Shown here piece by piece: positions 8,761 to 58,029 of a stretch of 58,029 nt of DNA. Under the pieces are notes generated by a model that was not told the DNA's origin, did not search any database, and was given only the letters and a program-made list of their open reading frames with translations. The DNA lies in the NCBI GenBank assembly GCA_002104905.1, contig MCFE01000558.1:1-58029 (forward strand). Direction: 5' to 3'. The position numbers were made by a program, and so were the translations under genes. The stretch's first letter is position 1. Each line of letters starts with the position of its first letter. This DNA comes from Basidiobolus meristosporus CBS 931.73. Taxonomy: Eukaryota > Fungi > Basidiobolomycota.

Positions 8761-10279
8761 ATGGCCACTTTTGAGGAACAGCGGGAAAAAGGTAGAGATT
8801 TACTCGGCTTCGCCACCCACGAGTCCAGACAAGTTCCTTTAATCGAACTACTGCTAAATTTGTCTGCCTTTCGACGTAGACGCAGAATCATTGGTTGACG
8901 AGGATGAGGAAATGACGGAGGAACAGAGAGGTCCATTTCAATTGCTGTCGGTTGCGCATGTCGAACAAGTAGGCTAAATCGATTTCTTTAGTGCAAATGG
9001 CCGACGGTGTGCAACAGGTCGAGAAGGTTCTGGGGAAAACCTCACACATAAGTAGAGACGTCATCGAAGATACACTGTGGTACTATTATTTCGACGTGGA
9101 GCAAACCATAGATTATTTGCGAGGTAACTGATTGTTTGATGAACGCTGTAGCCCACAGAATTGACACGCCATATTTTTTTGTCAGCCAAATATCCGGATA
9201 GTTTGATATCCAGCCTCTCTGAAGACCAAGGTGACTCTTTTATTCTTCTTGAGCCTCACTCTAGCTAACCTTTGCTTATAGAGGAAGCCAAATCTGGAAC
9301 CAAGTCAATTGCGGATGACCCTCTACCGCTCAGCACACAAATGGGTACACAGTCAAAACCCAACCCTACCACTATGAGTAAGCTCACTGAGGCATCAAGC
9401 AAATTATCACTCAACGATATTACCTCTCGGCTTTCATTGCAATCCAGCTCCCTCAGCTCAGCTACCAAGAAACTCGCTACAGACGCAACGAAAAATGACA
9501 AGCCACTTCTCTCTTTAGGCTCGAATTCTCTCTCTAAATCTACCATTAAGCCAGGCTTCGTCACAAACCTCTCAGGGAAACCTGGCTCAGCTCTCCATAC
9601 TCTCAAACCCATCGCACCCCTAACATCCACCCTTTCTAAATGCAGCGCCCCAGGGCTACAGTCACAATCGCTGTCAAACAGTCTCAAACACAGCAGCTCG
9701 ATATCATTGAGAGACTTGGGCACAAACAGTGGCCAGGCCGCTGCTAAGGAGCCCGCACATCGTAATATTATCAGTAGCGCATTGAGTGCATTATCCCAGT
9801 TACCAACAACTGGCGACAAGCCGGCTAAAAATACCTCATCCAAGTTGAATATAACCAGGACTGCTCCGATTAAGCCTCTATCAACCCGCGACTCGAGCAA
9901 TATGGCATCTTTAACACCAAAGAAGACTCTAAAAGAGATGACAGATTCTAACAGGTCCAAATTGCAGAGCGCAAACCCGGCAACACCTCCATCCGACGAG
10001 ATCTCTCCCAACGACACCACAACTATGGAAGCATCTCTCCACAAATCGAATTTGGTTGCGTCTCCCTCTGTGTTTGCTATCTCGGTGTTCGAGAACCTAG
10101 ACCAAGAGCATGAACGAGCATCGTTTTCGGCCAAGGACGATTGCAAGTTCTTTTATTCAATCCAATCCGAACACCTTCCGAAGCTTGTTAAACCTTTCAA
10201 ATTCGATTCGCCTAGTCCTGATGATATTGTACTGGTTGCACAAAGTCACCGCAGTGGTGGGAAGTTGGAAGTAAAATGA
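8761..10279 (+). CDS. HBS1 N-terminal domain plus Ski7-like (HBS1Lv3-like) exosome/SKI adaptor, no GTPase domain
   Basis: Phase-consistent GT-AG exons give MATFEEQREKDAESLVDEDEEMTEEQRVQMADGVQQVEKVLG..IEDTLWYYYFDVEQTIDYL (HBS1_N-like). A long Ser/Lys-rich exon follows with ASPSVFA and PFKFDSPSPDDIVLVAQ, ending at TGA 10279. The start codon is tentative. Confidence 0.8.
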
Positions 10280-10780
10280 GCTGGAGTAATCGCGCAGAAA
10301 AGTGAAAGCACGCCAAGTAGACGTTTATCGGTTGAAGATACCAATTCTGTTTTATGTACAAATTTCTGCTCAAAGATGCCTGGTTGATTTCCGCACTAGT
10401 CACACAGTATACATAATAGATCTAATAGAATATGAGTTGGTGAAATGTCTTGCAAAGTCGCAGTTGACAGAGGTCGTTTTAGCTATAAGTATTTGTTGCG
10501 TTTCCTGAGCGCTGTATATGTTAGTCGCTGTCGTCTGTGCATCGCCTTCTTAGTTGGTGAGTTCTTACTGAACTCTTGGGCTACATCGGGACTCTCCTTA
10601 ATACCTGAACCAAGACTTGTGAGTGTGTGGATGAACCCGGTTCTGACGAACAGGTAATGCTTACATGGAAGGTCCCCTTTAATCTGGAGTTCATGGGGAG
10701 GGTTTTTGTATCTTTTGGTGGCCTTCTTCAAACTTGTCGATTTACTGTTCGAAATATTGCATTCACTGTCTACTCCCATA

Positions 10781-13700
10781 TCAATTAGTAGGGCCACAAC
10801 AATCACATGAATGTTCTGGAATACCAAAAGTGACCCTTCTCTTCAATGATATTCTGGGCTGTGGCATAGGCTCATCCAGATATGTAGGAGTAAGTCTGCC
10901 TGGGCTCTTGATCTCTTTTTCCATTTTTTCTTCAGCTGTTGATGTTTTGTATAAATCAGGAGTATTGTGCAGACCATGGAGTAACAATTATTACCCTACC
11001 TCTACTGGTCACATTATCACTGCTGTATTTGAGCATATCACTGGCTTTACTTGAGCTGTCTTGAGGGAGAATCCTTTTGCTTTGAGGTTTCCTTAGTTTT
11101 CTCAATTGGGTAGAATTTTGGGCCTTTACTTCAGTTTCTGTGCCCTTGTAAGGACCATTAACAGATTTCTGCACATAAATGTTCAGCAGCAGAGAAACAT
11201 AGCATTGATGGTGGGTTGACTACCTGCCACTCATACTTGAGATTCTCCAGATCGGTGTCCCATAAGTCCGTTGGAGACTTTCCCTCAAGTAGCCTAATTT
11301 CCTGCCGATTGATGGCAATCTCCTCAAGGCACTGATCTATCTATATTATAAAACGATTCATTAGCAGGTTGTCCTTAGGATACTGGAGCCTTGGTATCCA
11401 CCTTCTCTTGTGTGAAACTTGATATTGGCATGTCGAGTAAGTAGTTGTACCCAGTAATTTCATCACACAACGATACACCTTTTGTATCTTCACCTGAAGG
11501 GTATACTTTGGTGTCCACATCAGTCTTATATCCTTTTTGCTCAAGCTCAGTAAGGATATCTCTTTTTTTCCGATTGTGTAACACTATGGTTCCATCAATC
11601 ATTTCTCTTAAAAAGTGAGCCTTGTTCTCTAAATTTTCTTTCTTCCTAACTAATTGTCTAAGAAGCCATTCCTATTATGCAAGATCCATGAGCAACTATC
11701 ATGAATGGAGTTCTAAGAAGACCAGTTACTTTGCGCTTGACATAGTATTCCAAACGTACTTCGTAAAACTCCCCCAGCATCTCTTCAGGCGAATGATATT
11801 TCCGAATTCTTAGATTTTTATCGCAACAAACCATATTGGAGGTGGAGATGTAGTTGACTAATTTGAATTTGTTTTCCAGCCCTTCAGATTCTGCTTCCTT
11901 CATTTTCTCTTCTGATAATTCTATTTTGAACTGAATCGAAGTATGGGTATGACACTCTTTATAGCTCTGAGGAGTGCGTGAGATTAGTTTGATTTGAATG
12001 ATAAATCTGGTTAGTCATGCACATAGCCAGTACCTTAATAAAAGGCTCTTTATCTTCATCAGATAACAAGCTTTCCAAATAATCCTTAAAAGGCTGTGTC
12101 CAACTTCGAACTGGTAATTCGTTGATTTCAACACTTGTAGGACTTGTTTTCTTTATGATTCCGGCTACTTTGTATTTGTCATGGGAGATAGGTATGATGG
12201 TTCCCTATTACAAAGAACACACCTTAGCACTCGCATATTTTTCATGACCAGCAGTAATATAGAAAACCTTGAAGCCTCTGTACCAAGGCGTCATTTTAAA
12301 GGTTTCTCTCCCATTCATTTTGCGTTTGAGATTTTCTATTACATCTAAGGGGTTGTAATTTGGGATTGTGGAACTCCACCCAGTGCCAACTCCTTCTCCA
12401 CCATTTATAAGCAGCAAAGGCACTATAGGAATATACCTAAATATACGAAATAAACACCTAATGTAGCAATTGAAATCGCCATTATACCAATTACCATTGG
12501 GGTTCAATTATTTGACCGTCATCACTTTTGAGATATGCCAATAACGGTTCATCAGCAGGATGAAAAATAAATGGAGCTATATCAGCGAGAGATGTATGTA
12601 TGTGACGGACATGGGCTGCATCCTTTCCGCCCTAATATTTGGAATGGTTAAACTGAATACATTCATACTTCTATAGATAGACTACGTGCTTGAGCTCGTG
12701 TCCCAAACTGTCCAATGGGCTCCAATAAATTGATGTTATTGCTTCCCATGAAATTCTGAGCCAACCCAATTATAATGGCACATAAACTCTGTTTCCCATG
12801 GCGATAAGAGCAGTGCTCCCTAACGTAGTCTGCAAGTTGCTGGACCTGAAAGGTAGTACTTTAGGGAAAATCTTGAAATATTTATTTACATAATGGTTAC
12901 CTTGATCCTCGTCTTCAACTTTTTCTGGAAGCAGTTGAATAGAACCTTTCTATGACCCGGTTTGAGACCGTCGATTAAGGAAGGAACTGAATGTATATTA
13001 TCATTCATCGCTATATATATATGTATGTACATACATATATAAGTAGATTGGAGGCTTAATCAATGGTAAAATAAAGGCCCTATACAAACGAAAATTAACT
13101 CTTTCGCGATGAAATCGGAAACTTCAACTCGAGACGCATTATAATTCATGCAGATTCCAAACTACCAAATTCAATTGCTAAGTTTGGTGGATAAAAATCA
13201 AACCTAGACACAAAGTACCTCGAATTTTCTGAGCCACACTTTGCGACCATCTCCTTTCGCTCCATCCAATGCTAAATCGATTAGGAAGTGGTCCGTGGGC
13301 TTCGCTTGAGAAGCATTTTCCTGGTAATACTTCAATGCTGCGAAATAGAGCTTAGCATCGCTAGCGGTGTTTGCTCCTAAACCCTGTGAAACGTAAACAT
13401 GGCTAATATGTTTCCCTTCTCAATGTATGATTAGGCGTTGTGGAACTACTTTGTGATATTCTACGCTCCATCCAATTCCATTGTTATTGCATTTTTTCCA
13501 AGCTTCATATTCTGGAATAGTAAAGAAGCTAATATCGAGTGGATCTTTTTTGACCTAATGAAATCGACAGTTATTTATCATCACTCTCTAGAAATAACTT
13601 GAGGAACTCTGAGCTTACGCGGATAATGGGCGTGATGAACTCTCTTAGAAAACCAGGATTTTTTAACAGAGTCGGCCAGAAATGATCAATAAATTTAACT

Positions 13701-15597
13701 ATAAGATCCTTGCTGTGAGACCCATTGTGATTCTGGTCAGTCATGATCATCAAATGACCATAACGTAAACTCTGGGTAGTGTGGTATTTTTTGCCATACC
13801 GCAACCCTAGAATCCTCTTGACATTGTTGATTTCGATATTTTCGTAGATTTGCTTACGAGAGGCACCTCTGACATCGAACACCTTTCCACTTAACGGAAA
13901 TATACCAAAATAATCGCGGCCAACAATCTCTAGTCCACTCATAGCTAGTGCTTTAGCCGAATCACCTTTGGTGAGTATCAGAGTGCAATCTTTCGCCCGC
14001 TCTGTCCCTGCAAAGTTGGCGTCATCAAGATTATTCAGCCTAGATAGCCTGGATTTCTTTTGATTGTCGCTTTTTTTCAACATTTTACCTTCGCTTATAG
14101 AAGCCAAGTTTGTGATGGATTCGACAACTGGTGCTAAACTAGCAAGCTTCGTCATGAACCCGTTAGACAATATTGGCTTGGATCCAAATTTGCTGGGTCT
14201 AAGCGTAAGACACTCTTTGGTTGGTGAATCGAATGTAGGATTTTCAATGGAACAATTGATAAATATCCAACATTGATTTTTTACTTGACGCTTCTTGATT
14301 AATGTACTTGTGCACCTTGCTTTAGCACAATCCAAAAGCTTATTGATGATTTGATCAGCAACATACTGCACATGTGTTCCACCCTTGCTAGTAGATATAC
14401 TATTGACAAAACTGACTTGCTGAAATTGGCTTTCACTTTGCGTGAAGCAAACCTCCCAGCAGTTTCTTCTCTCGCTTTTGATTCGTTCATAAATAATCAC
14501 GGGTTTTCCGAGCTCCTTGTTATGAATTTTATCTTTCAAATATAATTTGACGTAATCTTCGAAGCTTTTGATAGAAATCAAATGCTCGTTGAGATATACC
14601 TGGACATCCCCTCCGAAACATCCAGCAATATCATACACTCGTTTGATAAATAGGCTCTGGTGTACATCATCGATCTCATACATGCCAAACTTGGCCAGAT
14701 CAGGCTGAAAGGTGATTTTGGTATAATCCGTCTTATTACCAGTAGTGATAAAAGGTTTGCCGACTGTGGACATGTTATTGCTGAATACCTAAAATGCAAC
14801 AGTGGAGAAGTCCACGTTTTTAACATGTGAGCGCATCACATTATGAGATCATACGAGTTAACCTGCTTATAGTGCTGGCCATTCTCCTTGCTTCCAATTT
14901 CAACAATGAACTGTAAACTATAAATGTTACAGAGCTTTGCTCCATATCCGTCGTAATAGCCAGTATTTTTCTTTTCGAAATCGTTGCGGTTAGGTAAATG
15001 TCCAAAAATCAGCTCCGGTGTGTAGATTCCCTCTTTGGACTGGAATTCAATTGGAACACCCATTCCGTTGTTGAAGACAGAGATGATATTTTTCTCTTTA
15101 TTGATGTTGACCTTGAGGGTATTCATACTAGGATCTCGCACCTATATATAGGATCGGGCTAACTAAAACTACTGTTCCTTCATTTAGAAACACATCGGCG
15201 ATTTTACCTTATTTCCCGTGGCGTTGACCAGAATTTCGTCAAATATCTTGTAAAACCCGGGTACGATTTTTGTCTTCTTTAATGCCATACATTGATCCAC
15301 GGTAGAGTATACCCATAGATTTCTTTCAGTTGCATTGACTGATCCAATGTATGTATCAGGTCGGTGCAGTATATGTTCAATTTGAGTTTTCCTCTGGTAA
15401 ATGTCTATTACTACTTTAGAGGATGAGCAGGAGATTACTCTGTACATAGCATTCACTCTACCATCTAGGGATTTTTCGAGTGGGCTGGACAATGCTACAT
15501 TTGGAGGAGCATACTTGCATTTTTTAGGTGCACATGTTCCGACTTTCCGGACTCGGCGATAATGAATTGCAGTGCTGTTGACTCTAGTCATCTTCAT
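10781..15597 (-). CDS. TOP2: DNA topoisomerase II paralogue with substituted catalytic residues (probable pseudoenzyme or decaying duplicate); 3' end uncertain
   Basis: Top2 motifs in order: YQRKTQIEHILHRPDTYIGS, KIFDEILVNA, GYGAKLCN, TOPRIM, DGLKPGHRKV, GSNNINLL..GQFGTR, NGGEGVGTGWS. Exons are separated by short introns; a 400-codon exon spans 13571-14773. One probable +1 frameshift near 11640. Confidence 0.85.
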
Positions 15598-15866
15598 GTA
15601 GAACTTTGTGAATATGAAATCAGTGCAATGGGAACTGAGGACGCATTACCATGGAAGAGATGGACTCACGATTAAGAATGAAGAGATAGGGTGATTTCTA
15701 ACATAGATTATATAGGCAAGCTTCAGGTGGTTGCGTGTATGCGCATACCATTAGTCGAATGACGCGGACACGTATGTGAATGCTCAACAATGGTTTATTT
15801 CTAAAGACCTCGGCGTATTTTGGTATCTGGGCAAAATGTGTACAATGTCACTCATATAAGGAGCAT

Positions 15867-17536
15867 TTATTGAACCATTGGCCTGACGAAAGATTCAGAA
15901 GTGAGTAAATAGTTTGCAATCTCGGTAGTAGACAACATAAATACCTATATTCACGCAGGACCACTGGAACACTGGTACATGGAATCATACCAACTTCGGA
16001 AATAACGACCGTGATAAACTCCGAGGGAGTCAGGTCGTAAAGAAGATTCAACAGCCTCAAGTCGGGGATTGCCTTCCAGTCAGAAAGAGTCGAATGCTGA
16101 GTCCTGGTTGGCTTGATATTTCCAGAGGCGGAAGGACGGTCTGCTGAAGCAACCTCCTCAACATCCCCAATCTCGTTGTACACAAAGGAGTCCAGCTGTA
16201 CACGATCAGAGAACTTGTAAGTCTCACAGCAGACAATGACCGGGATTTTTTGGTGATTGGCCATCATGGCAACTATGGCAGTACCAGCACGTGAAAGCAT
16301 AGCTCCGTTGGAAAACATTCCATGTGCACCCAGAAATACTTTGGATACCTCCTTGATCACAAAGCCAACGGCGTTGATCAAGACGTATGTGCACTTTATT
16401 CCGGCCTGAGTCAGTCGCTTCATCAAGGTGATTCCTTCAAGCTTAGGTCGAGAGTCAACCACAATTACACGGAAGGAAATCCCCTTGGTATGTGCTTCAA
16501 GCAGAAGGCTTTGGACTATTGAGGAGCTAAAAGGTGATTTAGATACAAGGCTGCAATCTCTCGAAGCGAAGAATAGTGTTACCAGGCGTAGGTCAAGATC
16601 ACGTCGTTATTTTGAATCTTGTTGAGCCCAAAATCGACAATCATCTTGTCAGCAACGGTGATTCTGTCACGGATAAACTGATCGATTCGCTCAATGAGCA
16701 AGGCTTTGGCCTACAAATAAACATTACTCGGCTGTTGTTGTTGTTGTTGGAATGAGTAAACTTACGTCTTCGTCGGGTAAATCGATGCTTAGAATGGAGA
16801 TTTCGTATTTCAGATAACGAATTGCGTTGCCCATACTAACAGAGAGCGGACGCATGTTTACCAAGTAAGCAATTTGGGGGTTCAAATAGTGTTGGAGATT
16901 GCGGGTGAGAGTGGTATGTGGAGGGGTTTGATAATCTCGGATTACCTAAAGCTTTCTGTTAGCTTCGAAACCTTTGAAACCCATGCTACAAAACCACCTA
17001 CTTTCTTGAATGCGTTCAGGGTTGCCAATGCTCTGGCATTTGAGCCGGAAATCTGGAATTCGGAAAATTGCAGCCCAAGTGACATGATGGCTGGGTGAAG
17101 TTCTTTGGGGGCAGTCACGCCTGAAGGGCCCTTGGATTCCTCTAAATGAGCGAATAGACCGAGCTGTTTGGGTTTCTTATCTTCTTTTGAATTGATAGAT
17201 TTCGTTTTCGGCTGAGGTGTGGCATTTACCATAGGCTTGGTAGGAGTAGGCTTCGCAGCGTTAGCAGAGCCTCCCTTTGCTTTTTGTTGAGCACTATTGG
17301 CTTTCATGGCTTCCTTTTCTGCGCGTTGCTTCTCCTATTTTTAATTCCGATTAATACATCACCCGCCAGAAACGATACAAACACTCGGCAACCTGAAGTG
17401 CTCGACGTTCGGCTTTTGTCATTTCTTTCTGGGATTTTCTTACAGGAGTTTCCTCACCCTTGCGACTCTCATGCTCGTCTTTGCCTTTCCCTTTGCCCAA
17501 GGAGTGAGGTGGCGAAGAATCGGTGCCGTTTGACAT
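15867..17536 (-). CDS. GCD2: Translation initiation factor eIF2B subunit delta
   Basis: TKAERRALQ, LHPAIMSLGLQ..ISGSNAR, RPLSVSMGNAIR, VDSRPKLEG, CETYKFSDRVQLDS, YDLTPSEFIT..TSVPVVLRE; multi-exon. Confidence 0.95.
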
Positions 17537-17953
17537 CTCGTAGCTATGGTAAGAGAAACGGGATCATCAATGCTTGGGAAATATCGAATTTACTGTTGGT
17601 TGCCATCCGCCAAATGTTGTTTATATTTCATGTCTCTTGATAATCTAATCCAAATCGATTTAGAACTTGCATAACTCGGGCATAACGCTTAATGACCTTT
17701 GACAAATCAAGATATTTACGGTTAACAACTTGAACGACCAATTCGTCAAAATGATATTCTAATTGTCAGCATCACCACACATTGGTTCATTGATTTGTCA
17801 TCAATACCCACACACCTACGATATTATCCTAAACTTTAGGAAAATGAATGACTCAAAACCAGACAAAATGATGAAATCCGCTTCCAAGTAAATTCTTATC
17901 AAGGAATGAAATTTACATTTAGCACATACCTGTCGCTAGTATTGGTACTCTAA

Positions 17954-47068: not shown

Positions 47069-48384
47069 CCTCTCCACCATCTCCCCTTTATTTGTCATTT
47101 GATGATGTTGATACACGTACACATGAATTAAATGCTCCTTGTTTCGATCAATCTGGTTCGATGGAAGCGACACGAAATAGTCAAGTGGTGACGTTTATGT
47201 AACATATTCTAGGAAATCGATTAGCGTATGCTTGTGCATCCCTACCATCGGGCAAGTGGCGAATGCATAGTACAGAAATGAAGACCAAGCGGACACTCCA
47301 CCGACGACCAACAGGAACGTCAGCACTCGAAGCATTGCTCCTTGAAAATGCCCCTAGATCTGAGTAAATAATGTTGACCAGCGAGTCGTTTTGCATGCCA
47401 AAATAATTCCCAGATTTGGTTAATCATTCTTGAGGTAGCAAGCTCGTGGATCGTCTGAATGACGGCGCCACATTTTGAATGTTGGTGTTGGATGCACCGG
47501 TCGACAGCGAATATATTCTCCACAGTAGCCTCTCATTTGTATTGGCCAAGATCCGAGTTGATTCGGTGCAAGGGTAAAGATGTGCACAGCAAAATCTGGG
47601 CTCCGGGTGTTGTGTTAATCCAAAGTCAAATCATTCGAATTTGGCTCTCCAACATCTTCCCACTGTTCAAACCTCCAGGCACAGTCAATTAGAATTGAGT
47701 CCTCTCTGGTAGCAACCATCACCTTGTATACGTACACGTGTTCATCAAGATAACGTACGAAGGAGAGCACCTCTTGGCTTGAAAATAGGCAAATGATTTA
47801 ACCCTGAAACATGTATCACGCTCTTAAATAGCTGGTTTCCCTTACTTGAGGGGAAATCCGATTGTAGTTTCTGGTTTGGGCTGTCGTCAGTAGTTACGTG
47901 ATCCAAGTGGTGAGGGAGAGGTGAGCTTGATTTTGTATGAGGCTGCTTTGCGAGTGTTCTATGTTGTGTGCTGAACGGGTGTCGGTGGAGTTTGAGTTTT
48001 GATGGCAGAAGGATCACATATGATACGATATTTACTCGCCGGGAAGATCCTTGTAAACAAACCTAACAACAAGCAGTGGCACATACGGTTGGACAACCGT
48101 TCCTTTCCTACTTCACTCCATCTAGGTAGGGAGTGTATTGAAACTGGTCACGTGCGGGTTTTCTTTCTGTCAACGGAAGGTTTGCTGCAGCATGTTACGA
48201 TGGGAAATATGCATCTAAATACATGGAGGCAGGTATGAAGAATGCGGGGGAATAAGGTTGAGTCCACACAATAGACAGATTTCATATTCATCAAGATGTG
48301 CCTTGGCTTACTGAGACACCACTGGAGTGAAAAAGGGGCAGTAAGGGAGGGTGTGGGGTACCCCATACTTTCCTCCGAAGTGAG

Positions 48385-48390
48385 TATAAA
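48385..48390 (+). promoter_or_regulatory. Candidate TATA box of the Gly/Asn repeat gene
   Basis: TATAAA about 50 bp upstream of ATG 48436. Confidence 0.45.
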
Positions 48391-48435
48391 TTGATCAAGA
48401 CACTCACTTGGCAGCATATCTCTCTCAACAACAAA

Positions 48436-50340
48436 ATGAAATTCTCCGCACCAAGAATCTTGTGCTTCCTCTCTGGTTTGGCTGCAATCAACGCCGCAGC
48501 TTTCGATAGAAGACTACAGGCCAGAAGCGGTGGGGCTTACGACGTGACCGATCTATTTGACGGAGGGAATGAAAGTGGTGGTAGCGGAGCTGGCGCTTAT
48601 GGCCCCGGAAATGGTGATAACGGAAGCGGCGGTAACGGCAATGGAGGCAATGGTGATGGCAGTGGCAACGGCGGTAATGGAAATGGAGGAAATGGAGATG
48701 GCAATGGTAATGGAGGCAATGGAGCCGGTGCTTATGGCTCTGGCAATGGTGGAAACGGAAACGGCGGTAACGGCAATGGAGGCAATGGTGATGGCAGTGG
48801 CAACGGCGGTAATGGAAATGGAGATGGCAATGGAAACGGTGGCAACGGAGCCGGTGCATATGACTCTGGCAATGGTGGAAACGGCGGTAACGGCAATGGA
48901 GGTAATGGTGCTGGCAATGGCAACGGCGGTAATGGAAATGGAGGAAATGATGATGGCAATGACAAGGGAGGCAGCGGAGACGGTGCATATGACTCTGGCA
49001 ATGGTGGAAACGGAAACGGCGGTAACGGCAATGGAGGCAATGGTGATGGCAATGGCAACGGTAGTAACGGAGCCGGTGCTTACGACTCTGGAAACAGCAA
49101 CGGCGGTAATGGAAATGGAGATGGCAATGGAGGCGATGGGAACGGTGGTAACGGAGCTGGTGCTTACGACTCTGGTAATGGTGGAAATGGAAATGACGGT
49201 AACGGCAATGGAGGCAACGGTGGTAACGGGGCCAGTGCTTACGACTCTGGAAACGGCAACGGCGGTAATGGAAATGGAGGAAATGGAGATGGCAATGGTA
49301 ATGGAGGCAATGGAGCCGGTGCTTATGGCTCTGGCAATGGTGGAAACGGAAACGGCGGTAACGGCAATGGAGGCAATGGTGATGGCAATGGCAACGGTGG
49401 TAACGGAGCCGGTGCTTACGACTCTGGAAACAGCAACGGCGGTAATGGAAATAGAGATGGCAATGGTAATGGAGGCGATGGGAACGGTGGTAACGGAGCT
49501 GGTGCTTACGACTCTGGTAATGGTGGAAATGGAAATGGCGGTAACGGCAATGGAGGCAATGGTGATGGCAATGGCAACGGTGGTAACGGAGCCGGTGCTT
49601 ACGACTCTGGAAACAGCAACGGTGGTAATGGAAATGGAGATGGAGATGGCAATGGTAATGGAGGCGATGGGAACGGTGGTAACGGAGCTGGTACTTACGA
49701 CTCTGGTAATGGTGGAAATGGAAATGGCGGTAATGGCAATGGAGGCAATGGTGATGGCAGTGGCAACGGCGGTAATGGAAATGGAGATGGCAATGGAAAC
49801 GGTGGCAACGGAGCCGGTGTATATGACTCTGGCAATGGTGGAAACGGCGGTAACGGCAATGGAGGCAATGGTGCTGGCAATGGCAACGGCGGTAATGGAA
49901 ATGGAGGAAATGATGATGGCAATGGCAAGGGAGGCAGCGGAGACGGTGCATATGACTCTGGCGATGGTGGAAACGGAAATGGCGGTAACGGCAATGGAGG
50001 CAATGGCAACGGCGGTAATGGAAATGGCGACGGAGGCAACGGAGCCGGTACATATGACTCTGGCAATGGTGGAAACGGAAACGATAGTAACGGCAATGGT
50101 AATGGAGGTATTGGCAACGGTAATGGAGGAAATGGAAACGGTGGTAACGGCGCTGGTACTTATGGCTCTGGAAACGGCAGCGGTGGTAACGGAAACGATG
50201 GCACTGGAGGCGGCAATGGCAATGGTGGTAACGGAGCCAGTGCTTATAACTCTGGAAATGATGGAAACGGAAACGGAGGCAATGGCTCTGGAAGCGGTAA
50301 TGGGAATGGTGCCGGCAACGGTAGTGGCGATTGTCAGTAA
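48436..50340 (+). CDS. Secreted Gly/Asn-rich tandem-repeat protein (634 aa)
   Basis: Signal-peptide-like MKFSAPRILCFLSGLAAINAAA, then GNG/GGN repeats punctuated by about 18 GAGAY(D/G)S-type motifs; ends GSGDCQ. No introns. Confidence 0.82.
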   Translation: MKFSAPRILCFLSGLAAINAAAFDRRLQARSGGAYDVTDLFDGGNESGGSGAGAYGPGNGDNGSGGNGNGGNGDGSGNGGNGNGGNGDGNGNGGNGAGAYGSGNGGNGNGGNGNGGNGDGSGNGGNGNGDGNGNGGNGAGAYDSGNGGNGGNGNGGNGAGNGNGGNGNGGNDDGNDKGGSGDGAYDSGNGGNGNGGNGNGGNGDGNGNGSNGAGAYDSGNSNGGNGNGDGNGGDGNGGNGAGAYDSGNGGNGNDGNGNGGNGGNGASAYDSGNGNGGNGNGGNGDGNGNGGNGAGAYGSGNGGNGNGGNGNGGNGDGNGNGGNGAGAYDSGNSNGGNGNRDGNGNGGDGNGGNGAGAYDSGNGGNGNGGNGNGGNGDGNGNGGNGAGAYDSGNSNGGNGNGDGDGNGNGGDGNGGNGAGTYDSGNGGNGNGGNGNGGNGDGSGNGGNGNGDGNGNGGNGAGVYDSGNGGNGGNGNGGNGAGNGNGGNGNGGNDDGNGKGGSGDGAYDSGDGGNGNGGNGNGGNGNGGNGNGDGGNGAGTYDSGNGGNGNDSNGNGNGGIGNGNGGNGNGGNGAGTYGSGNGSGGNGNDGTGGGNGNGGNGASAYNSGNDGNGNGGNGSGSGNGNGAGNGSGDCQ

Positions 50341-50659
50341 CTCATAGAGCTATGGTAGAATGATCATGTATTTAAAATCTATTTAATCCATAAATAAAAT
50401 TGCTCAATAGATCGAATGCCATTTTGTATGATGTTGCTTCTCTAAGTGTTCTGTGGCTTTGTATTTGAAGCAACATATGGCTATATATGTTTTACTCCTT
50501 TGATTTATGTAGATTATGGTTAAGGGGAGAGCAGGAAAGTGATGATTGCGGATCCATTGATACAGGTGGACTATTTGTGTATGCCGCCTATTGGAAATCA
50601 GTCTAGAGCCAAAAGAAGTGTTAGGAGAGTACTGAAAAGTTAATGCACTCAGATTTTTT

Positions 50660-50890
50660 GGGGAGGGGGAAGGAAAGTCATCAAGTGGTGAAATCTTTAC
50701 TTACTTAAAACAAGCAAATCTGAAGTTGTTCCTTGAAAGCTAGGCCTCACAGATATCTTGGGGAGGGAAACTCACCAAGTATTGGTGAAATCTTTATTTG
50801 CAGTCTGGATTAAAACAAACATAGAAGCCAGCAGGGATGTAAGTCCCGTAAACAATAATTCTAAACTGAATTCAAAGCAGTATCCCAAAG
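50660..50890 (-). mobile_element. Two old 3'-end fragments of the telomeric retroelement family (SINE-like at 50660-50757; ORF1-element-like at 50758-50890)
   Basis: Each starts with a G-rich run plus the AAAGTCA(T/C)CAAG..GGTGAAATCTTTA-type tail and matches the corresponding younger units. Confidence 0.7.
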
Positions 50891-51381
50891 AGTGAAATCT
50901 TTATCAAGTATCCTAAATAAAGAAGCCAAGTTAGAATATAGATATCTGGAATGCAGAAAGCCTACAAGATTAACTTGGACTTTGCTGCTTCCCAAATATC
51001 CTTAATATCAAAGTCTAGTGGAAAACGCAGTAAGACTGCTTGTTCACTGTAGTATTTCCTGAGGAAGATTGTCACTTGGAGGGAGGCATGGTTTTTGAAT
51101 AAGTTGGTAAATTCATTGAGGAGTACTTTCTCAAGAGAAAATGATACAAAGAGAGGACTACCTAAATGATGTCCAAATATGTGATCCAAGAGCTCCCAAT
51201 CTAGCATATTTTTGACTTCATCTGTAGACTCCTCAACAATATCCTTATCAAGAATAACTCATAAGAGATCCCTGGCAATGTATTGAATGTTAATAATATT
51301 AGGCATATGGATGTATAGGTCCTTGAGGTAGTGTACTTGTTCTGATATTGAAAGGTAACCAGCATTTCTGAAGTAGTAAAC
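50891..51381 (-). mobile_element. Diverged ORF1-like retroelement (second subfamily), 5'-truncated, one in-frame stop
   Basis: YLSISEQVHYLKDLYIHMPNIINIQYIARDLL*VILDKDIVEE..DHIFGHHLGSPLFVSFSLEKVLLNEFTNLFKN..VTIFLRKYY aligns with the ORF at 56775-57302. Tail GTGAAATCTTTA..AAAGAAGCCA. Confidence 0.75.
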
Positions 51382-51764
51382 TTAGGGTAAGGGCTAGGGG
51401 GAAACAGTTGCCAATAGGTGAAATATTTATTTTAGCCAAGACAAAGGAGCCAGCACTACTGTTGTGGCTTTGATACAAGAGTGCGGAGCTGAGGGAAATT
51501 GGTAGTTAAATCAAATAGAAGAAATGATAGCTCTTCAGTGCTCAAGACTGTTCAGGGTTAGGGGGGATGAAAGTCACCAAGTGGTAAATTCCTTATTTAC
51601 TTATAACAAGTATCTAAAGAAGCCAAGTTAATGTGAAGTTATTCCTAGAAAGCTGCGTCTGAGAGATATCTTCCAGGTAAGCCAGGACTGAGAAGTGAGA
51701 ATCTGAGTATATCTGAGGTGAATAGTAATGATTTGTGGTAGCTGATATATGGCCAGGATGGCCA
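51382..51764 (-). mobile_element. Degenerate telomere repeats plus RT-element 3' fragment (51382-51553), then AGGGTTAGGG plus SINE 3' fragment (51554-51764)
   Basis: TTAGGGTAAGGGCTAGGGG precedes sequence matching the RT ORF end (CTACTGTTGT.GCTTTGATACAAG). The second part matches 56121-56390. Confidence 0.78.
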
Positions 51765-53331
51765 CCCTGTGAAAAATAATTTGGTCATGCAAGTGGATCT
51801 AATCCAGATCAGCCATCAGGATCCCATTTAGAGACCATCACAATACCAGCAGCTTGGAATTAGTGACCCTCCTGACAATCTTATGATGGGATCATGATGG
51901 TGTTTGCTAATTTTACAACCAAATAACAGGATAAAACTTTACAATATTTTATTGGTGCTGTGACAATATTTGCATCGTATTGTTGCGGTCTTTGAATTAT
52001 TGGCAGTATGATGGCCTACTACTGGTTCTGTAAAATGCTACCATACTAACTTACCAAATGGTATTTCCTTTTTCTACCTCCCCTTGTGCAATTCATATAT
52101 TCCACTGTAGAATCACCCCTCTTTATTTGCTTACCCACTACTACCTTGGGTATACCACATATAGTTTGAATCAAATAAAACTATGGCCTCCTACTTACTA
52201 ACCTCTAAAAATGCACACACCTGCCGCAATTGACATACTTCTATCACCTCAGCTTTGCAGCTTTTTAGTGTGATACTGGAGAAGTTACCATATACCTTGT
52301 ACTGCTGGTAACATATACATCTTGCAACATATGCTTAGTTGTTGCCACTACTGCCATGAATACCTCCTGAATATCCACAAAGAGCTTCTTGGTATTTAGC
52401 CAATATACTTCTTCTCCCTGCTGGATTCTAGTCCCCCTTATAGGTGTGCTTGGGCTTTTGCTTGTGTGAATTCCATATTGAATGGTGTAGAAGCTGGTTT
52501 GTGACCATGAGAAATCCAGCATATCTTGGTAGAGTTTTGCTGATAAAATTAGTTGCTTGTTGCACCCAACCCAACTTTGCATTACTTAACCAATTACCCA
52601 TGCATTGGGGCTGCTTAGCTTCTTAATGCCATAGGCATTGGTGTCTCCATGTGCACATTTGTCCTCAGTATTTTCCAACTCTTTCTGGCTGTCCTCCTTG
52701 TGCTAACTCATCACATCTATGACGGACTGGAAGGTAATATTCTTGAAGAGATTGGGATATGGTAGTACCTGCAACTTGACTTGTCTTCCCATCTCCCCAC
52801 ACATCTGCTCCATAGGAAACTCCCAAAAGCTGAAGCAAGGCCCAATATTCTCCACATACCATGCAAGATGGAGTAGAGAATGGATACAGTAGCAGCAGAG
52901 CTCTACATGTTCAGCTTTATGTTTGTAGTATAGCCGCTCAAATCCTGTCACAATCTCCTCACAAAACAGCTGTAGATGCATCAAGTTGGCATTGGTGATC
53001 TGCTTCTGGATAAATATTCCTACAATGTCCACATATGACTCCCAATGCTTCCAATGTACTCTTGGTAGGAATGGCTTCAGAACACCACTTGAATAAATAC
53101 ACATTAAGTTCATCCAGTCTTTGCATTTCTATTGTTGCATATGTGCATGAGTATTGATTGGAGCCTGTGAGAAGTATTTAGGGTAGCATATACTCTGTAA
53201 TATCTTGTCAATTCTTTCAAATTCCTCTGGTATCTTGAAGGGCTCATTTGGCATGTAATGCCCCATGTACAACTTGATCATCAGTATAGGGATATTGTTG
53301 AAAAGCAAATGCATTGCTCCCAGTGGAAAGC
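51765..53331 (-). mobile_element. Second, inverted, truncated copy of the CACTA-like transposon
   Basis: The reverse complement aligns with about 790-2208 (HWKHWESYVDIVGIFIQ, IHSLLHLAWYVENIGPCFSFWEFPMEQMCG). The terminus CCCTGTGAAAAATAATTTGG interrupts a SINE; the element is cut at GGAAAGCTT|AGGGG. Confidence 0.85.
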
Positions 53332-53630
53332 TTAGGGGAGGGAAAGTCACCAAAGTAGGTGAAATCTTTATTTGATTTCAGACAAGTCTAACTTCAAATA
53401 AACAAGCCAGCTGGGAATAGAAGATTCCCAAAGTAAAAACCAAGTTGAATATGAATAAATCTAAGCTAAGGTTAAGGCAGTATCCCAGAGTACACTGGAG
53501 TTCAGGTTCATGGGGGAGTGAAGTAGATAAGTTTGAGAGATATAATAATCTTTCAGAAAGTGGGTAACAGCAGGTGAAGGGAAGTTTTTGATAAGTGAAG
53601 TGAATCTTGAGAGCAGAGATTCCTCTAATG
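53332..53630 (-). mobile_element. 3' fragment of the ORF1-only retroelement
   Basis: TTAGGGG plus tail; near-identical to 56652-56943. Confidence 0.85.
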
Positions 53631-55146
53631 GGCTAGGGGGAGACAGTCACCAACAGGTGAAATCTTTATTTCAGTTGAAACAAAGAAGCCAGCACTACTG
53701 TTGTAGCTTTGATACAAGAGTGTGTAGCTGAGGGGAATTTGCAGGTAAGTTAATAAGAAGTGATGATAGTTCTTCAGTGCTCAAGACACTGTTCAGTGGG
53801 AAGGGGGGTAGCAAGAGAGGTAGGAATGACTTGTGAACAACATTAATGAGGGGAATGTGATAAGGATTGATATTCATCATAAAGGGAGTGTGCTGCTGCA
53901 GATATTGCTGCCAAAAGTCTGTCAAGTACTTCAGGTAGGCCAGCTTGGGCTTTTCTGACTGCAGAATATAGTGAGCAAACTTCTTGACTTCAGGATCTCC
54001 AAGTATAGTTCTCCAGCAGGAGCCAGGTGTTGTGTGGTGTGTTCTCTTACAGGCCTTAATCAGTGGGTTGTTGCAGTTATGAAGTCTGAGGTATAATCTG
54101 GTTCTAAGGTAGAGAAGTCTGATCTTGTAGGGCATAAACCCAAAAGCACCAAGAATAGCATGTCTGTAGGGGCATTCAGGCAAATGAGGCACCAAGGAGG
54201 TAATGCACCATACTGCAAACTTGTCAAGCTTAGTACAGTCTCTAGAAGTAAGAGAGAGAAGTGGTAAGCCAAATTCCAGGACAGGGAAGACAAACTGCTT
54301 GAGTAGAAGGAGGCAGCTGGTAGCTGAAGCTGTAGGAGGAGTAACAGCCAGTAGCTTGTGGAGTGCCTGTCTTGCCAGGATAATTCTCTTCTTCAGGTGT
54401 GCTCCAGAGTCTAGTCCATTAGGAAGAAAAGGAAAGCCAAGATATTTAGCAGAAACCTGAGCAGGTAGTGTTGAGTTCTCCAAGTTGATGGGAGAGCCCA
54501 AAGGTACTGTCTTTGCAATGGAAAGCTGGAGATTATTCTTCTGCAGATACTGGTGGATGGTCTGGGAGTCTTGTTGCACATTGGAGGAGGATATTCTGAT
54601 GTCATCAGCAAGGAGAGTAACCAGACAGTCAGCTGAGAGTCTTGGGAAATCATTCAGGAAGATGGCAAACAGTATAGAACCAAGCACAGAGCCTTGAACC
54701 ACTCCATTAGGAACTGAGAGCACAGCTGATTGCTCACTTGGGTGCAGAGTTCTTGCTTGTGGATCCAGAAACAGAGACCTGACAAGGAGGGTGAGAGAGG
54801 TACTGGAGAAGCATTGCAACTTGCACCAAAGCAGATTTCTGTCAACAGAATCAAAGGCCTTAGTAATATCAAACAGAACAGAGGGATACTTGCACTGGAG
54901 AGAGTGATCTTGGCTAAGTATGACTGCATATTCCAAGGAGAGGCCAGGAACTAAGCCAAACTGTGCAGGATGAAACTTGAGGGAGTTGGAGTAGAGCTCC
55001 TGAGCAAGCAGAAGCTCAAACACCTTTCTGCAGGTGGGCAGCAGAGATATTGGCCTGTAGGAGCTAGGATCCAGGTGCTTTCCTTTACCCTTGTACAGTG
55101 GCAGAACATTCGCAAAGGACCATTCCTCAGGAGTAGAAAGCTGGGC
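53631..55146 (-). mobile_element. 5'-truncated non-LTR (LINE-type) retrotransposon with an open RT frame
   Basis: The frame is open from the truncation point: PEEWSFANVLPLYKGKG..SYRPISLLPTCRKVFE..FDITKAFDSVDR..GVVQGSVLGSILF..LADD..KYLG, stop at 53695, then a short 3' UTR and tail. Confidence 0.93.
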
Positions 55147-56100
55147 TTAGGGGGGGAGACAGTCACCAACAGGTGAAATCTTTATTTCAGTTGAAACAAA
55201 GAAGCCAGCGCTACTGTTGTAGCTTTGATACAAGAGTGTGTAGCTGAGGGGAATTTGTAGGTAAGTTAATAAGAAGTGATGATAGTTCTTCAGTGCTCAA
55301 GACACTGTTCAGTGGGAAGGGGGGTAGCAAGAGAGGTAACAATGACTTGTGAACAACATTAATGAGGGGAATGTGATAAGGATTGATATTCATCATAAAG
55401 GGAGTGTGCTGCTGCAGATATTGCTGCCAAAGGTCTGTCAAGTACTTCAGGTAGGCCAGCTTGGGTTTTTCTGACTGCAGAATATAGTGAGCAAACTTCT
55501 TGACTTCAGGATCTCCAAGTATAGTTCTCCAGCAGGAGCCAGGTGTTGTGTGGTGTGTTCTCTTCCAGGCCTTAATCAGTGGGTTGTTGCAGTTATGAAG
55601 TCTGAGGTATAATCTGGTTCTAAGGTAGAGAAGTCTGATCTTATAGGGCATAAACCCAAAAGCACCAAGAATAGCATGTCTGTAGGGGCATTCAGGCAAA
55701 TGAGGCACCAAGGAGGTAATGCACCATACTGCAAACTTGTCAAGCTTAGTGCAGTCTCTAGAAGTAAGAGAGAGAAGTGGTAAGCCAAATTCCAGGACAG
55801 GGAAGACAAACTGCTTGAGTAGAAGGAGGCAGCTGGGAGCTGAAGTTGTAGGAGGAGTAACAGCCAGTAGCTTGTGGAGTGCCTGTCTTGCCAGGATAAT
55901 TCTCTTCTTCAGGTGTGCTCCAGAGTCTAGTCCAGTAGGAAGGAAAGGAAAGCCAAGATATGTAGCAGAAACCTGAGCAGGTAGAGTGGAGTTCTCCAAG
56001 TTGATGGCAGAGCCCAAAGGTACTGTCTTTGCAATGGAAAGCTGGAGATTATTCTTCTGCAGATACTGGTGGATGGTCTGGGAGTCTTGTTGCACATTGG
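55147..56100 (-). mobile_element. Second, more deeply 5'-truncated copy of the LINE RT element
   Basis: Near-identical to 53636-54584 (roughly 15-20 differences by eye). Starts at TTAG plus a G-run; truncated just after the ADD motif region. Confidence 0.93.
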
Positions 56101-56122
56101 AGGGTTAGGGTTAGGGTTTAGG
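56101..56122 (+). repeat. Internal telomeric repeat tract
   Basis: AGGGTTAGGGTTAGGGTTTAGG lies between a truncated LINE and a SINE. Confidence 0.9.
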
Positions 56123-56643
56123 GGGGAGGAAAGTCACCAAGTGGTGAAATCTTTATTTACTTATGACAAGTATCTAAAGAAGCCAAGTTAATCTGAAGTA
56201 ATTCCTAGAAAGCTAGGTCTGAGAGATATCTTCCTGGTAAGCCAGGTCTGAGAGTTGAGAAGCTGAGTGGTACTATATTTCCTAGTTAGCTAGGTCTGAG
56301 AGAGGTTTCCTGGAAAGCCAGGCCTGAGAAGTGAGAATCTGAATATATCTGAGCTAAGTTTTACTGGTTTGCGGTAGCTGAATTGTGGCCGGAATGGCCA
56401 GTAGACTGGGGGAACTGAGATGAATTTCTGGGCAATCACTGGCCAAATTTACTAGGCAAATCTGACCAATTAGCATTTCAAGGATTTCAGCCAATCAGAG
56501 CCTTTACTTTGCCCGATGGTTGATCAAGCCATCTCCCAATGAGCACACATCAATTTATTGATCAAATTTTGCTGGATCCAGGATTTGAACCCACAACCAT
56601 GGGTATGGAAGGGTTAGGGATAACCACAAGGCTAAGTGTTCTT
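56121..56643 (-). mobile_element. Full-length 523-bp SINE-like element with tRNA-type A/B boxes
   Basis: Minus-strand TAGCCTTGTGG (56634-56624) and GGTTCAAATCC (56591-56581) lie 32 nt apart. No ORF; LINE-type 3' tail; same ends as the copy at 57306-57828. Confidence 0.75.
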
Positions 56644-57303
56644 GGTTAGGGGAGGGAAAGTCACCAAGGTAGGTGAAATCTTTATTTGATTTCAGACAAG
56701 TCTAACTACAAATAAAGAAGCCAGCTGGGAATAGAAGATTCCCAAAGTAAACACAAAGTTGAATATGAATAAATCTAAGCTAAAGTTAAGGCAGTATCCC
56801 AGAGTACACTGGAGTTCAGGTTCATGGGGGAGTGAAGTAGATAAGCTTGAGAGATATAATAATCTTTAAGGAAGTGGGTAACAGCAGGTGAAGGGGAGTT
56901 TTTGATAAGTGAAGTAAATCTTGAGAGCAGAGATTCCTCTAATGAGAAGGTCTTGTAAACTGGAGAATCAGGAAACTCTTTAAAGGCATGGTCAGTAGGT
57001 TCCCAGTAAAACTGGTCAGAGACATTTTGAGAGAATTCTTTAGCAATACTTTTGTCAAGTACTACCTCCAGAGTGTGATGGTTGATAAATCTCATGTTAA
57101 CAATATTGGATAAGTTGTAACCTTGTTGCTTGAGATACATCCTATGCTCAGATATAGGAATAAACTCCACATTGGCAAAGTAGCAGACAGCCCAGTCAGT
57201 AGCAGGAGGTAGATCAGAAGTGGCAGGAAACTTTCTTTTGGTCTTTGGGGGAGCAGCAAGAATTCTTGAGGAAGCAGGAGCAGGCTTTTTGACAGCTTCA
57301 GAG
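56644..57303 (-). mobile_element. 5'-truncated RT-less retroelement encoding an ORF1/RNA-binding-like protein
   Basis: The frame is open from 57302 to the stop at 56775 (SEAVKKPAPASSR..DWAVCYFANVEFIPISEHRMYLKQQGYNLSNIVNMRFINHHTLEVVLD..), followed by about 120 bp of UTR and the shared tail. Confidence 0.75.
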
Positions 57304-57305
57304 TA

Positions 57306-57828
57306 GGGGGGAGGAAAGTCACCAAGTGGTGAAATCTTTATTTACTTATGACAAGTATCTAAAGAAGCCAAGTTAATCTGAAGTTATTCCTAGAAAGCTA
57401 GGTCTGAGAGATATCTTCCTGGTAAGCCAGGTCTGAGAGTTGAGAGGCTGAGTGGTACTATATTTCCTAGTTAGCTAGGTCTGAGAGAGGTTTCCTGGAA
57501 AGCCAGGCCTGACAAGTGAGAATCTGAATATATCTGAGCTAAGTTATACTGGTTTGCGGTAGCTGAATTGTAGCCGGGATGGCCAGTAGACTGGGGGAAC
57601 TGAGATGTATTTCTGGGCGATCACTGGCCAAATTTACTGGGCAAATCTGGCCAATTAGCATTTCAAGGATTTCAGCCAATCAGAGCCTTTACTTTGCCCG
57701 ATGGTTGATCAAGCCATCTCCCAATGAGCACACATCAATTTATTAATCAAATTTAGTTGGATCCAGGATTTGAACCCACAACCATGGGTATGGAAGGGTT
57801 AGGGATAACCACAAGGCTAAGTGTTCTT
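57306..57828 (-). mobile_element. Terminal full-length 523-bp SINE-like element directly abutting the telomere
   Basis: Near-identical to 56121-56643; A box 57819-57809, B box 57776-57766. Confidence 0.78.
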
Positions 57829-58029
57829 GGTTAGGGTTAGGGTTAGGGTTAGGGTTAGGGTTAGGGTTAGGGTTAGGGTTAGGGTTAGGGTTAGGGTTAG
57901 GGTTAGGGTTAGGGTTAGGGTTAGGGTTAGGGTTAGGGTTAGGGTTAGGGTTAGGGTTAGGGTTAGGGTTAGGGTTAGGGTTAGGTTAGGGTTAGGGTTA
58001 GGGTTAGGGTTAGGGTTAGGGTTAGGTTA
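57829..58029 (+). repeat. Telomere (TTAGGG)n, about 33 units
   Basis: Uninterrupted GGTTAG repeats to the window end, with two TTAGG variants. Confidence 0.99.

Follow-up and report, generated by a model that had tools for sequence, protein, structure and literature searches.

A Top2-like gene of Basidiobolus meristosporus with all three active centres replaced: a candidate non-catalytic descendant of DNA topoisomerase II

A Top2-like gene lies on the minus strand (~10956–15597) of contig MCFE01000558.1 of the fungus Basidiobolus meristosporus CBS 931.73, and the window studied here is the whole stretch of this contig, 58,029 nucleotides (nt) long, from assembly GCA_002104905.1. The public annotation of this gene, hereafter the window gene, is P0389, a protein of 1209 aa that maps onto the window under the label "DNA topoisomerase II". 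We found that residues of all three active centres of the enzyme are replaced in the window gene and that its long core reading frame has stayed open. Because of the observed substitutions and the established chemistry of type IIA enzymes, the product can be taken with near certainty to be non-catalytic, with no topoisomerase activity possible. We lean, by a little, towards the reading that the gene encodes a Top2-derived pseudoenzyme maintained by selection.

Results

Replacement of catalytic residues

The window gene was compared with an alignment of 220 Top2 proteins from outside Basidiobolus, and its residues were numbered as in P0389. A sequence-only reading of the window had listed changes at the catalytic tyrosine, the TOPRIM glutamate, PLRGK, DQDHD, the ATP lid and the QTK motif, together with a three-residue deletion at the lid, and all of them were found where it had placed them, on the minus strand. 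The changes at the N-box and at YHHGE in the following list go beyond that reading.

15214–15216, minus: N-box Asp to Gly (D78G)
14941–14964, minus: ATP lid TGGRNGYG to TGYYDGYG (G142Y, R143Y, N144D)
14222–14224, minus: QTK Gln to Pro (Q362P), FDSQTK to FDSPTK
13967–13969, minus: TOPRIM Glu to Lys (E447K), TEGDSA to TKGDSA
13889–13891, minus: PLRGK to PLSGK (R473S)
13724–13738, minus: DQDHD to DQNHN (D526N, D528N), replacing the second and third of the three DxD aspartates
12801–12803 and 12792–12794, minus: YHHGE to YRHGK (H728R and E731K, respectively)
12602–12604, minus: catalytic Tyr to His (Y782H), PRYIFT to VRHIHT

The deletion removes 9 nt (3 codons) just upstream of the ATP lid, within the same exon; the three paralogous genes all have 288 nt here, and the window gene has 279 nt. 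At each of D78, G142, R143, N144, Q362, E447, R473, D526, D528, E731 and Y782, the residue of the window gene occurred in 0 of the 220 Top2 proteins, bearing out the claim that all three active centres are disabled. Seven of these eleven columns (D78, G142, Q362, E447, D526, D528 and Y782) were 100% invariant among the 220, and the tyrosine was present in 220/220 background proteins and in 5/5 other Basidiobolus Top2 proteins. The uniqueness of the window-gene residues at motif positions lies far beyond chance. In mutagenesis of yeast and human Top2, each single loss of this kind abolishes or cripples cleavage or ATPase activity, and histidine is unable to form the 5ʹ-phosphotyrosyl link.

The complete Top2 domain order, namely GHKL, transducer, TOPRIM, winged-helix domain (WHD)/DNA_topoisoIV and C-gate, was present along with clear homology. 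The largest exon is an open reading frame of 400 aa that matched residues 205–583 of human TOP2A (E=4e-114, PDB). In Pfam, the matches to DNA_topoisoIV (4e-95), TOPRIM_C (5e-31) and DNA_gyraseB (2e-23) were still strong; the Toprim score of 16.9 fell under the cutoff of 23.1, and HATPase_c gave no match in the window gene. Residues retained include the GHKL Glu and Asn, the lid Lys and the QTK Lys, and at the DNA gate the active-site Arg beside the tyrosine position, KPGHRK, GQFGTR and the Lys of PLxGK. On these comparisons, the window gene is a Top2 by homology and not in the enzymatic sense, and the public label overstates its function.

Gene structure and reading frame

The exon model was drawn by eye from the sequence, verified by script and later confirmed by P0389, which differs from it in four respects: a later start codon, a 6-nt shift of an acceptor, a 37-nt intron and an unspliced last exon. 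For the comparison of introns, the Basidiobolus Top2 proteins P0290, P0293 and P0300, whose relationships are given below, were mapped exactly onto their own loci, and their genes are the paralogues named in the following list. JGI refers to the Joint Genome Institute.

15462–15597, minus: exon 1a, N-terminal and poorly conserved, with an ATG at 15597; the JGI model begins at Met 15447
15405–15461, minus: intron 1, 57 nt, phase 1, GT-AG, at the same position as intron 1 of P0290, P0293 and P0300
15208–15404, minus: exon 1b, 197 nt, equal in the three paralogues; GHKL N-box E-x-x-x-N retained, N-box Asp replaced by Gly
14863–15141, minus: exon 2, 279 nt, 9 nt fewer than in the paralogues; contains the altered ATP lid
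13619–14788, minus: exon 3, 390 codons, transducer and TOPRIM; holds the QTK, TOPRIM Glu, PLRGK and DxD changes, the last being NxN at 13724–13732
13450–13554, minus: exon 4, 105 nt, length as in the paralogues
13219–13383, minus: exon 5, 165 nt, length as in the paralogues
13086–13161, minus: exon 6, 76 nt, length as in the paralogues
12901–13010, minus: exon 7, 110 nt; the winged-helix domain begins; KPGHRK retained
12690–12845, minus: exon 8, 156 nt; YHHGE changed to YRHGK, GQFGTR retained
12632–12689, minus: intron 8, 58 nt, conserved position, GC donor at 12688–12689; the JGI model has a 37-nt GT-AG intron here, adding 7 residues
12495–12631, minus: exon 9; active-site Arg retained, catalytic Tyr replaced by His
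12268–12436, minus: exon 10, 169 nt, length as in the paralogues
12034–12204, minus: exon 11, 171 nt as against 174 nt in the paralogues, in frame
11730–11966, minus: exon 12, 237 nt, length as in the paralogues
11402–11671, minus: exon 13, 270 nt, in-frame length variant
11224–11340, minus: exon 14, 117 nt, length as in the paralogues; the conserved core ends here
10956–11168, minus: the annotated model ends with this exon, which encodes a short basic tail and has its stop at 10956–10958; the 3ʹ structure is tentative
10483–10536, minus: relic of the ancestral C-terminal domain, basic motif RRQRLTY..RKRNK (10492–10536), then a stop at 10483–10485

The introns of the window gene agreed in position and phase with those of the three paralogous genes. 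Across the 15 core exons, the 1128 aligned codons were free of stops and frameshifts, and exon lengths were either identical to those of the paralogues or differed by multiples of 3 (279 versus 288, 137 versus 134 and 171 versus 174 nt); two further exons vary in length in all copies. All indels specific to the window gene were in frame, and 14 of the 15 core introns were GT-AG, the remaining one being GC-AG. The sequence-only reading had stated that over 1000 codons, the splice sites and the domain order are kept, and this holds with the qualification of the one GC donor. Apart from this GT-to-GC donor, no disabling lesion was found in the core, and such lesions were confined to the fast-evolving C-terminal domain. 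A retrocopy origin was rejected, as 15 introns stand at conserved positions.

The neighbourhood is gene-dense, with short introns of 55–78 nt; exact look-ups of neighbouring open reading frames gave no recorded product. The contig ends in TTAGGG telomere repeats (57830–58029), about 42 kb from the Top2-like gene, and these are preceded by a strongly GC-skewed block with a reverse transcriptase (48000–57800).

Paralogues, orthologue and synteny

Relatives were sought first with an alignment in which a full-length chytrid Top2 came at the top and to which five exons of the window were added, and then with P0290:1-800. Among 1.8 billion representative proteins, none had more than 55% identity to the 400-aa exon in a search whose length filter excluded full-length relatives. 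Five other Basidiobolus Top2 proteins were found, which together with the window gene form three paralogue groups.

Clade A: B. meristosporus P0331 and B. ranarum P0381, ~50% identity to the window gene
Clade B1: B. meristosporus P0293 and B. ranarum P0300, ~63% identity to the window gene
Clade B2: the window gene and B. ranarum P0290, the latter with 65–66% identity to the window gene

Every catalytic residue was retained in all five of these proteins. The genome of B. meristosporus thus carries two canonical Top2 genes, P0331 and P0293, beside which the window gene is a true paralogue, as had been supposed. The public model of P0293 (1228 aa) appears truncated, with the C-terminal domain running on in further exons (L003 10633–11537).

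In a quick IQ-TREE protein tree, whose root and deep forks are unsettled, the window gene and P0290 were sisters (SH-aLRT 99), and the order DEAD-box helicase, IF-2B, Top2 and HBS1_N was common to the window locus and the B. ranarum P0290 locus. This sister position and the common neighbours identify the two genes as orthologues. The sequence-only reading had raised the prospect of there being no orthologue in related species; we found syntenic copies both in B. ranarum and in a second isolate described below.

At the window locus, IF-2B lies directly upstream of Top2 (15848–17600 and 10956–15597, respectively), and the pair also occurs at L002 3944–11571, L003 3631–10633 and L004 3670–11742, which are B1 and B2 copies in the two species. 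The presence of IF-2B beside both B1 and B2 Top2 genes reflects a joint segmental duplication before the split of B. ranarum and B. meristosporus. An HBS1_N/Ski7-like gene lies at 8761–10279 of the window, and its syntenic counterpart stands beside the B. ranarum Top2 in a conserved arrangement (L002 11744–13404; a 463-aa product with an HBS1_N match only). In the tree, a long stem of 0.52 separated clade B (B1 and B2) from clade A, which fell among other early-diverging fungi. Judged from the tree, clade B could represent a paralogue that is old, fast-evolving or foreign.

Selection on the window-gene branch

Synonymous sites were saturated both against B. ranarum and against the B1 paralogue, leaving NG86 undefined, and the pairwise ratio of non-synonymous to synonymous rates (dN/dS) was replaced by ancestral-codon counts, in which codons identical in the other three genes were taken as ancestral. 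By these counts, the proportion of non-synonymous over synonymous changes (pN/pS), as a whole-branch average, was ~0.13 on the window-gene branch, compared to 0.02–0.05 for the paralogues. A ratio near 1, which the sequence-only reading had named as the sign of a simple decaying pseudogene, was therefore not what the branch displayed. The dN branch lengths were fitted by least squares by hand on the tree ((W,R290),(M293,R300)), and were ~0.168 for the window gene (W), 0.048 for P0290 (R290), 0.055 for P0293 (M293) and 0.040 for P0300 (R300).

When sites were grouped by conservation, the window gene had replaced 12.6% of those at least 99.5% conserved, 11.6% of those conserved at 95–99.5%, 23.9% at 80–95%, 27.3% at 50–80% and 34.8% below 50%; in the functional paralogues, 0% were replaced in the two top classes. 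This gradient indicates that constraint was strongly relaxed but not gone. Besides the catalytic losses, about 190 further lineage-specific replacements were counted. To account for the 12% loss of invariant sites by neutral drift, a divergence d of ~0.06 (~6% nucleotide) is required. Simulation on the codons of the orthologue at this divergence gave a mean of 7.5 stops and P(no stop)=0.0005, and at the lower confidence bound, d ~0.04 (4%), P(no stop) was 0.004; nonsense made up 5.3% of non-synonymous mutations at these sites. The replacements were also milder than random single-base changes, with a mean BLOSUM62 score of +0.20 versus an expected −0.29 at sites at least 80% conserved (P=0.004), and with P<0.0002 over all sites. 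Four tests indicated that selection acted at the protein level during the loss of the active sites.

RIP-like mutation was considered as the cause of the low GC content (39%) and of the Glu-to-Lys and Asp-to-Asn changes, and was rejected on the ground of a balanced spectrum: lineage-specific changes ran at 0.187 GC>AT per GC site and 0.139 AT>GC per AT site, with no dominance of C>T/G>A.

Source reads and a second isolate

In the Logan assembly of the source reads, an independent contig spanned the stretch with 0 differences and normal depth, which rules out an assembly slip in these data; among the other contigs of the source run, only a 34-nt piece reached 80% identity to the stretch. Run X3, filed under the source sample, was without this locus. 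Pieces resembling Top2 and IF-2B, at 77–81% identity, lay on two of its contigs, of 11 kb and 35 kb, and one of these carries the canonical DQDHD; the run appears to stem from another Basidiobolus genome that bears this sample's label.

Runs X4/X5 come from a different sample that bears this species' label, here called the second isolate, and yielded one 37-kb contig collinear with 11194–16951, with identities of ~83% in the Top2 exons and ~90% across IF-2B. Divergence left several introns unaligned, and residue states were read from the listed base differences. In the block 12070–13003 there were four 1-nt indels, all in introns 7 and 10, and the sole exon indel was a 3-nt deletion in exon 9. 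Such confinement of 1-nt indels to introns is as expected of a conserved reading frame. The last Asn codon of DQNHN (13726) starts with A in both isolates, so the last DxD aspartate is lost in the second isolate too. At least one metal ligand was thus gone before the isolates diverged by ~17%, and the frame outlived that loss.

Discussion

Proposed history of the gene

The following course of events would fit the results. The window gene, as copy B2 the third Top2 gene of the genome, arose with its IF-2B neighbour by the old segmental duplication, and in this lineage only it has been deprived of the residues that bind and hydrolyse ATP, of those for metal-assisted cleavage and of the catalytic tyrosine. 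The core of ~1130 codons would meanwhile have been kept open and correctly spliceable under weakened but real protein-level selection. The product would most likely be a Top2-fold protein of ~1200 residues with no enzymatic activity. It might still dimerise through the Top2 gates and bind DNA without cutting it, as a homodimer; alternatively, it might pair with the active B1 paralogue in a heterodimer that is non-productive and so dampens Top2 activity. The roles of DNA clamp, scaffold or dominant modulator proposed in the sequence-only reading remain conjectural in the same way.

Weighing the explanations

Much can be set against a protein kept by selection, and it speaks for an early-stage decaying duplicate, that is, an unprocessed pseudogene, redundant beside two canonical Top2 genes, with its core left open by a short neutral phase or by luck. 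The orthologue P0290 is fully canonical, so the dead state is not shared across species, and the catalytic loss is therefore young and lineage-specific, dating from after the split from B. ranarum. The second isolate preserves part of the ancestral state: its first Asn codon of DQNHN (13732) starts with G, which is Asp-type, and it keeps the ancestral bases at the radical sites 13659 and 13713. With the losses only partly common to the two isolates, they must have accumulated stepwise. Its alignment also contains four candidate 1-nt gaps in exons 2, 4 and 5, near 13314, 13322, 13537 and 14945. The window branch is 3.5 times that of the orthologue in dN and ~5 times in the protein tree (1.01 versus 0.20), the excess substitutions are spread near-evenly over the ATPase, transducer, TOPRIM, WHD, tower and C-gate (16–34%) with no interface visibly spared, replacements exceed those of the orthologue by a rather similar margin in every conservation class (~12–23%), and every Pfam domain score is reduced. 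A limited search of public runs turned up no RNA run with the stretch, and so no evidence of expression. The GC content at third codon positions is 0.42, compared to 0.52 in the B1 copy and 0.50–0.75 in neighbouring genes, and is nearer to that of the gene's own introns (0.355). Intron 8 begins with a GC donor, in contrast to GT in every paralogue. Decay is plain in the C-terminal domain: ~325 residues in P0290 correspond to only a short basic tail, the terminal acidic motif is absent from the window gene, and the motif relic is off-frame, with similarity to the paralogue tail continuing through the premature stop at 10483–10485. The B1 copy of the same genome has the full tail, terminal acidic motif included. 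A check by hand of splice paths that keep the conserved phase and use introns of normal length found none from the core frame to the relic, though an atypical intron of ~420 nt could still connect them. Finally, the gene was picked for looking intact, an ascertainment that favours rare stop-free pseudogenes and inflates the significance of the missing stop codons. This weakens the stop-codon argument but not those from chemistry, site classes and indels. A neutral phase of the length needed for the 12% loss at invariant sites predicts some 7.5 stops, and the probability of none stays low at the smaller divergence, and decay alone fits poorly with indels that are all in frame, with significantly conservative replacements, with 1-nt indels confined to introns against the second isolate in the block compared, and with 14 of 15 introns still GT-AG, the GT-to-GC change being the mildest possible. 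We regard simple decay as a serious possibility, though one that falls short of being probable, and selection may have ceased very recently.

Two further explanations carry far less weight. A still-active type II topoisomerase that uses unusual residues could point to the full domain order, to the strong TOP2A and DNA_topoisoIV matches, and to the retained GHKL catalytic Glu, Mg-binding Asn, QTK Lys and Arg beside the tyrosine position. It would have to work without the Tyr, the TOPRIM Glu, two DxD Asp, three lid residues, the N-box Asp and the QTK Gln, all exchanged for residues that no Top2 of the alignment has at these positions, when single losses cripple the enzyme and His cannot replace Tyr in the covalent link; we find it scarcely credible. 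A mis-assembly, or a divergent haplotype with a canonical other allele, would be easier to imagine in Basidiobolus, whose genome is very large and at least diploid, with many duplicated genes (PMC3281927), and where run X3 of the same sample label lacks the locus and has two diverged Top2 and IF-2B loci. The identical Logan contig at normal depth, the near absence of other matching contigs in the source run and the collinear copy of the second isolate, which has part of the same degeneration, make such an artefact very improbable. The retention of redundant gene copies in Basidiobolus (PMC3281927) fits a selected gene as well as a decaying one.

The non-catalytic Top2-fold protein of the sequence-only reading therefore stands in part. 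Its loss of catalysis holds and selection is indicated; the canonical P0290, the second isolate with only part of the losses, the even spread of change over the domains, the decayed C-terminal domain and the GC donor tell the other way, and a selection-maintained pseudoenzyme comes out as only slightly favoured. A more specific version, and on present evidence an unlikely one, is that this is the first natural non-catalytic type IIA topoisomerase, kept as a non-cleaving DNA-binding dimer or as an attenuator acting through inactive B1 heterodimers, and seen within a few per cent divergence of its birth. If expressed and selected, the window gene would show how a large multi-gate enzyme can turn into a regulatory or DNA-binding protein that is no longer an enzyme. 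Should the gene be decaying and nothing more, it would be a well-dated case of slow frame loss in a 1200-codon duplicate. Either way the comparators are unusually clean: a canonical orthologue in B. ranarum, an intermediate second isolate and two active paralogues in the same genome.

Comparison with known systems

Few enzymes are as conserved as type IIA topoisomerases, and our literature searches brought up no natural paralogue of this type with all active centres replaced. The window gene has the same order of GHKL ATPase, transducer, TOPRIM, winged helix, tower and coiled-coil/C-gate as eukaryotic Top2 (yeast Top2, human TOP2A and TOP2B) and is 47–54% identical to the canonical enzymes, from which it differs in the Tyr, the TOPRIM Glu, two DxD Asp, the lid, the N-box Asp, the QTK Gln and the C-terminal domain. 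Engineered dead Top2 subunits, such as the yeast Tyr-to-Phe mutant and ATPase-site mutants, fold, dimerise and bind DNA, and their heterodimers with the wild type block strand passage. The lesions are of the same kinds, but those are laboratory point mutants, whereas the window gene is natural and carries the many further replacements counted above. The window gene resembles an unprocessed pseudogene in evolving faster, in having replaced residues that are otherwise invariant, in its altered splice donor, in the decay of its 3ʹ part and in its lower third-position GC; it differs by the open 1128-codon core, the low pN/pS, the conservative replacements and the in-frame indels.

The nearest precedent for non-catalytic descendants of type II topoisomerases is provided by SPO11 partners of the TOPOVIBL/Rec102 type. 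TOPOVIBL is a topoisomerase-derived GHKL-like subunit that has lost its ATP-binding motifs and is kept for a non-ATPase role (PMC9665070). Those partners are type IIB and of ancient origin, are conserved throughout eukaryotes and have an established role in meiosis, whereas the window gene is type IIA, young and limited to one lineage. In the TOPOVIBL/Rec102-type systems, the ATPase subunit alone is degenerate and SPO11 keeps its tyrosine, whereas the window gene is dead in all three centres.

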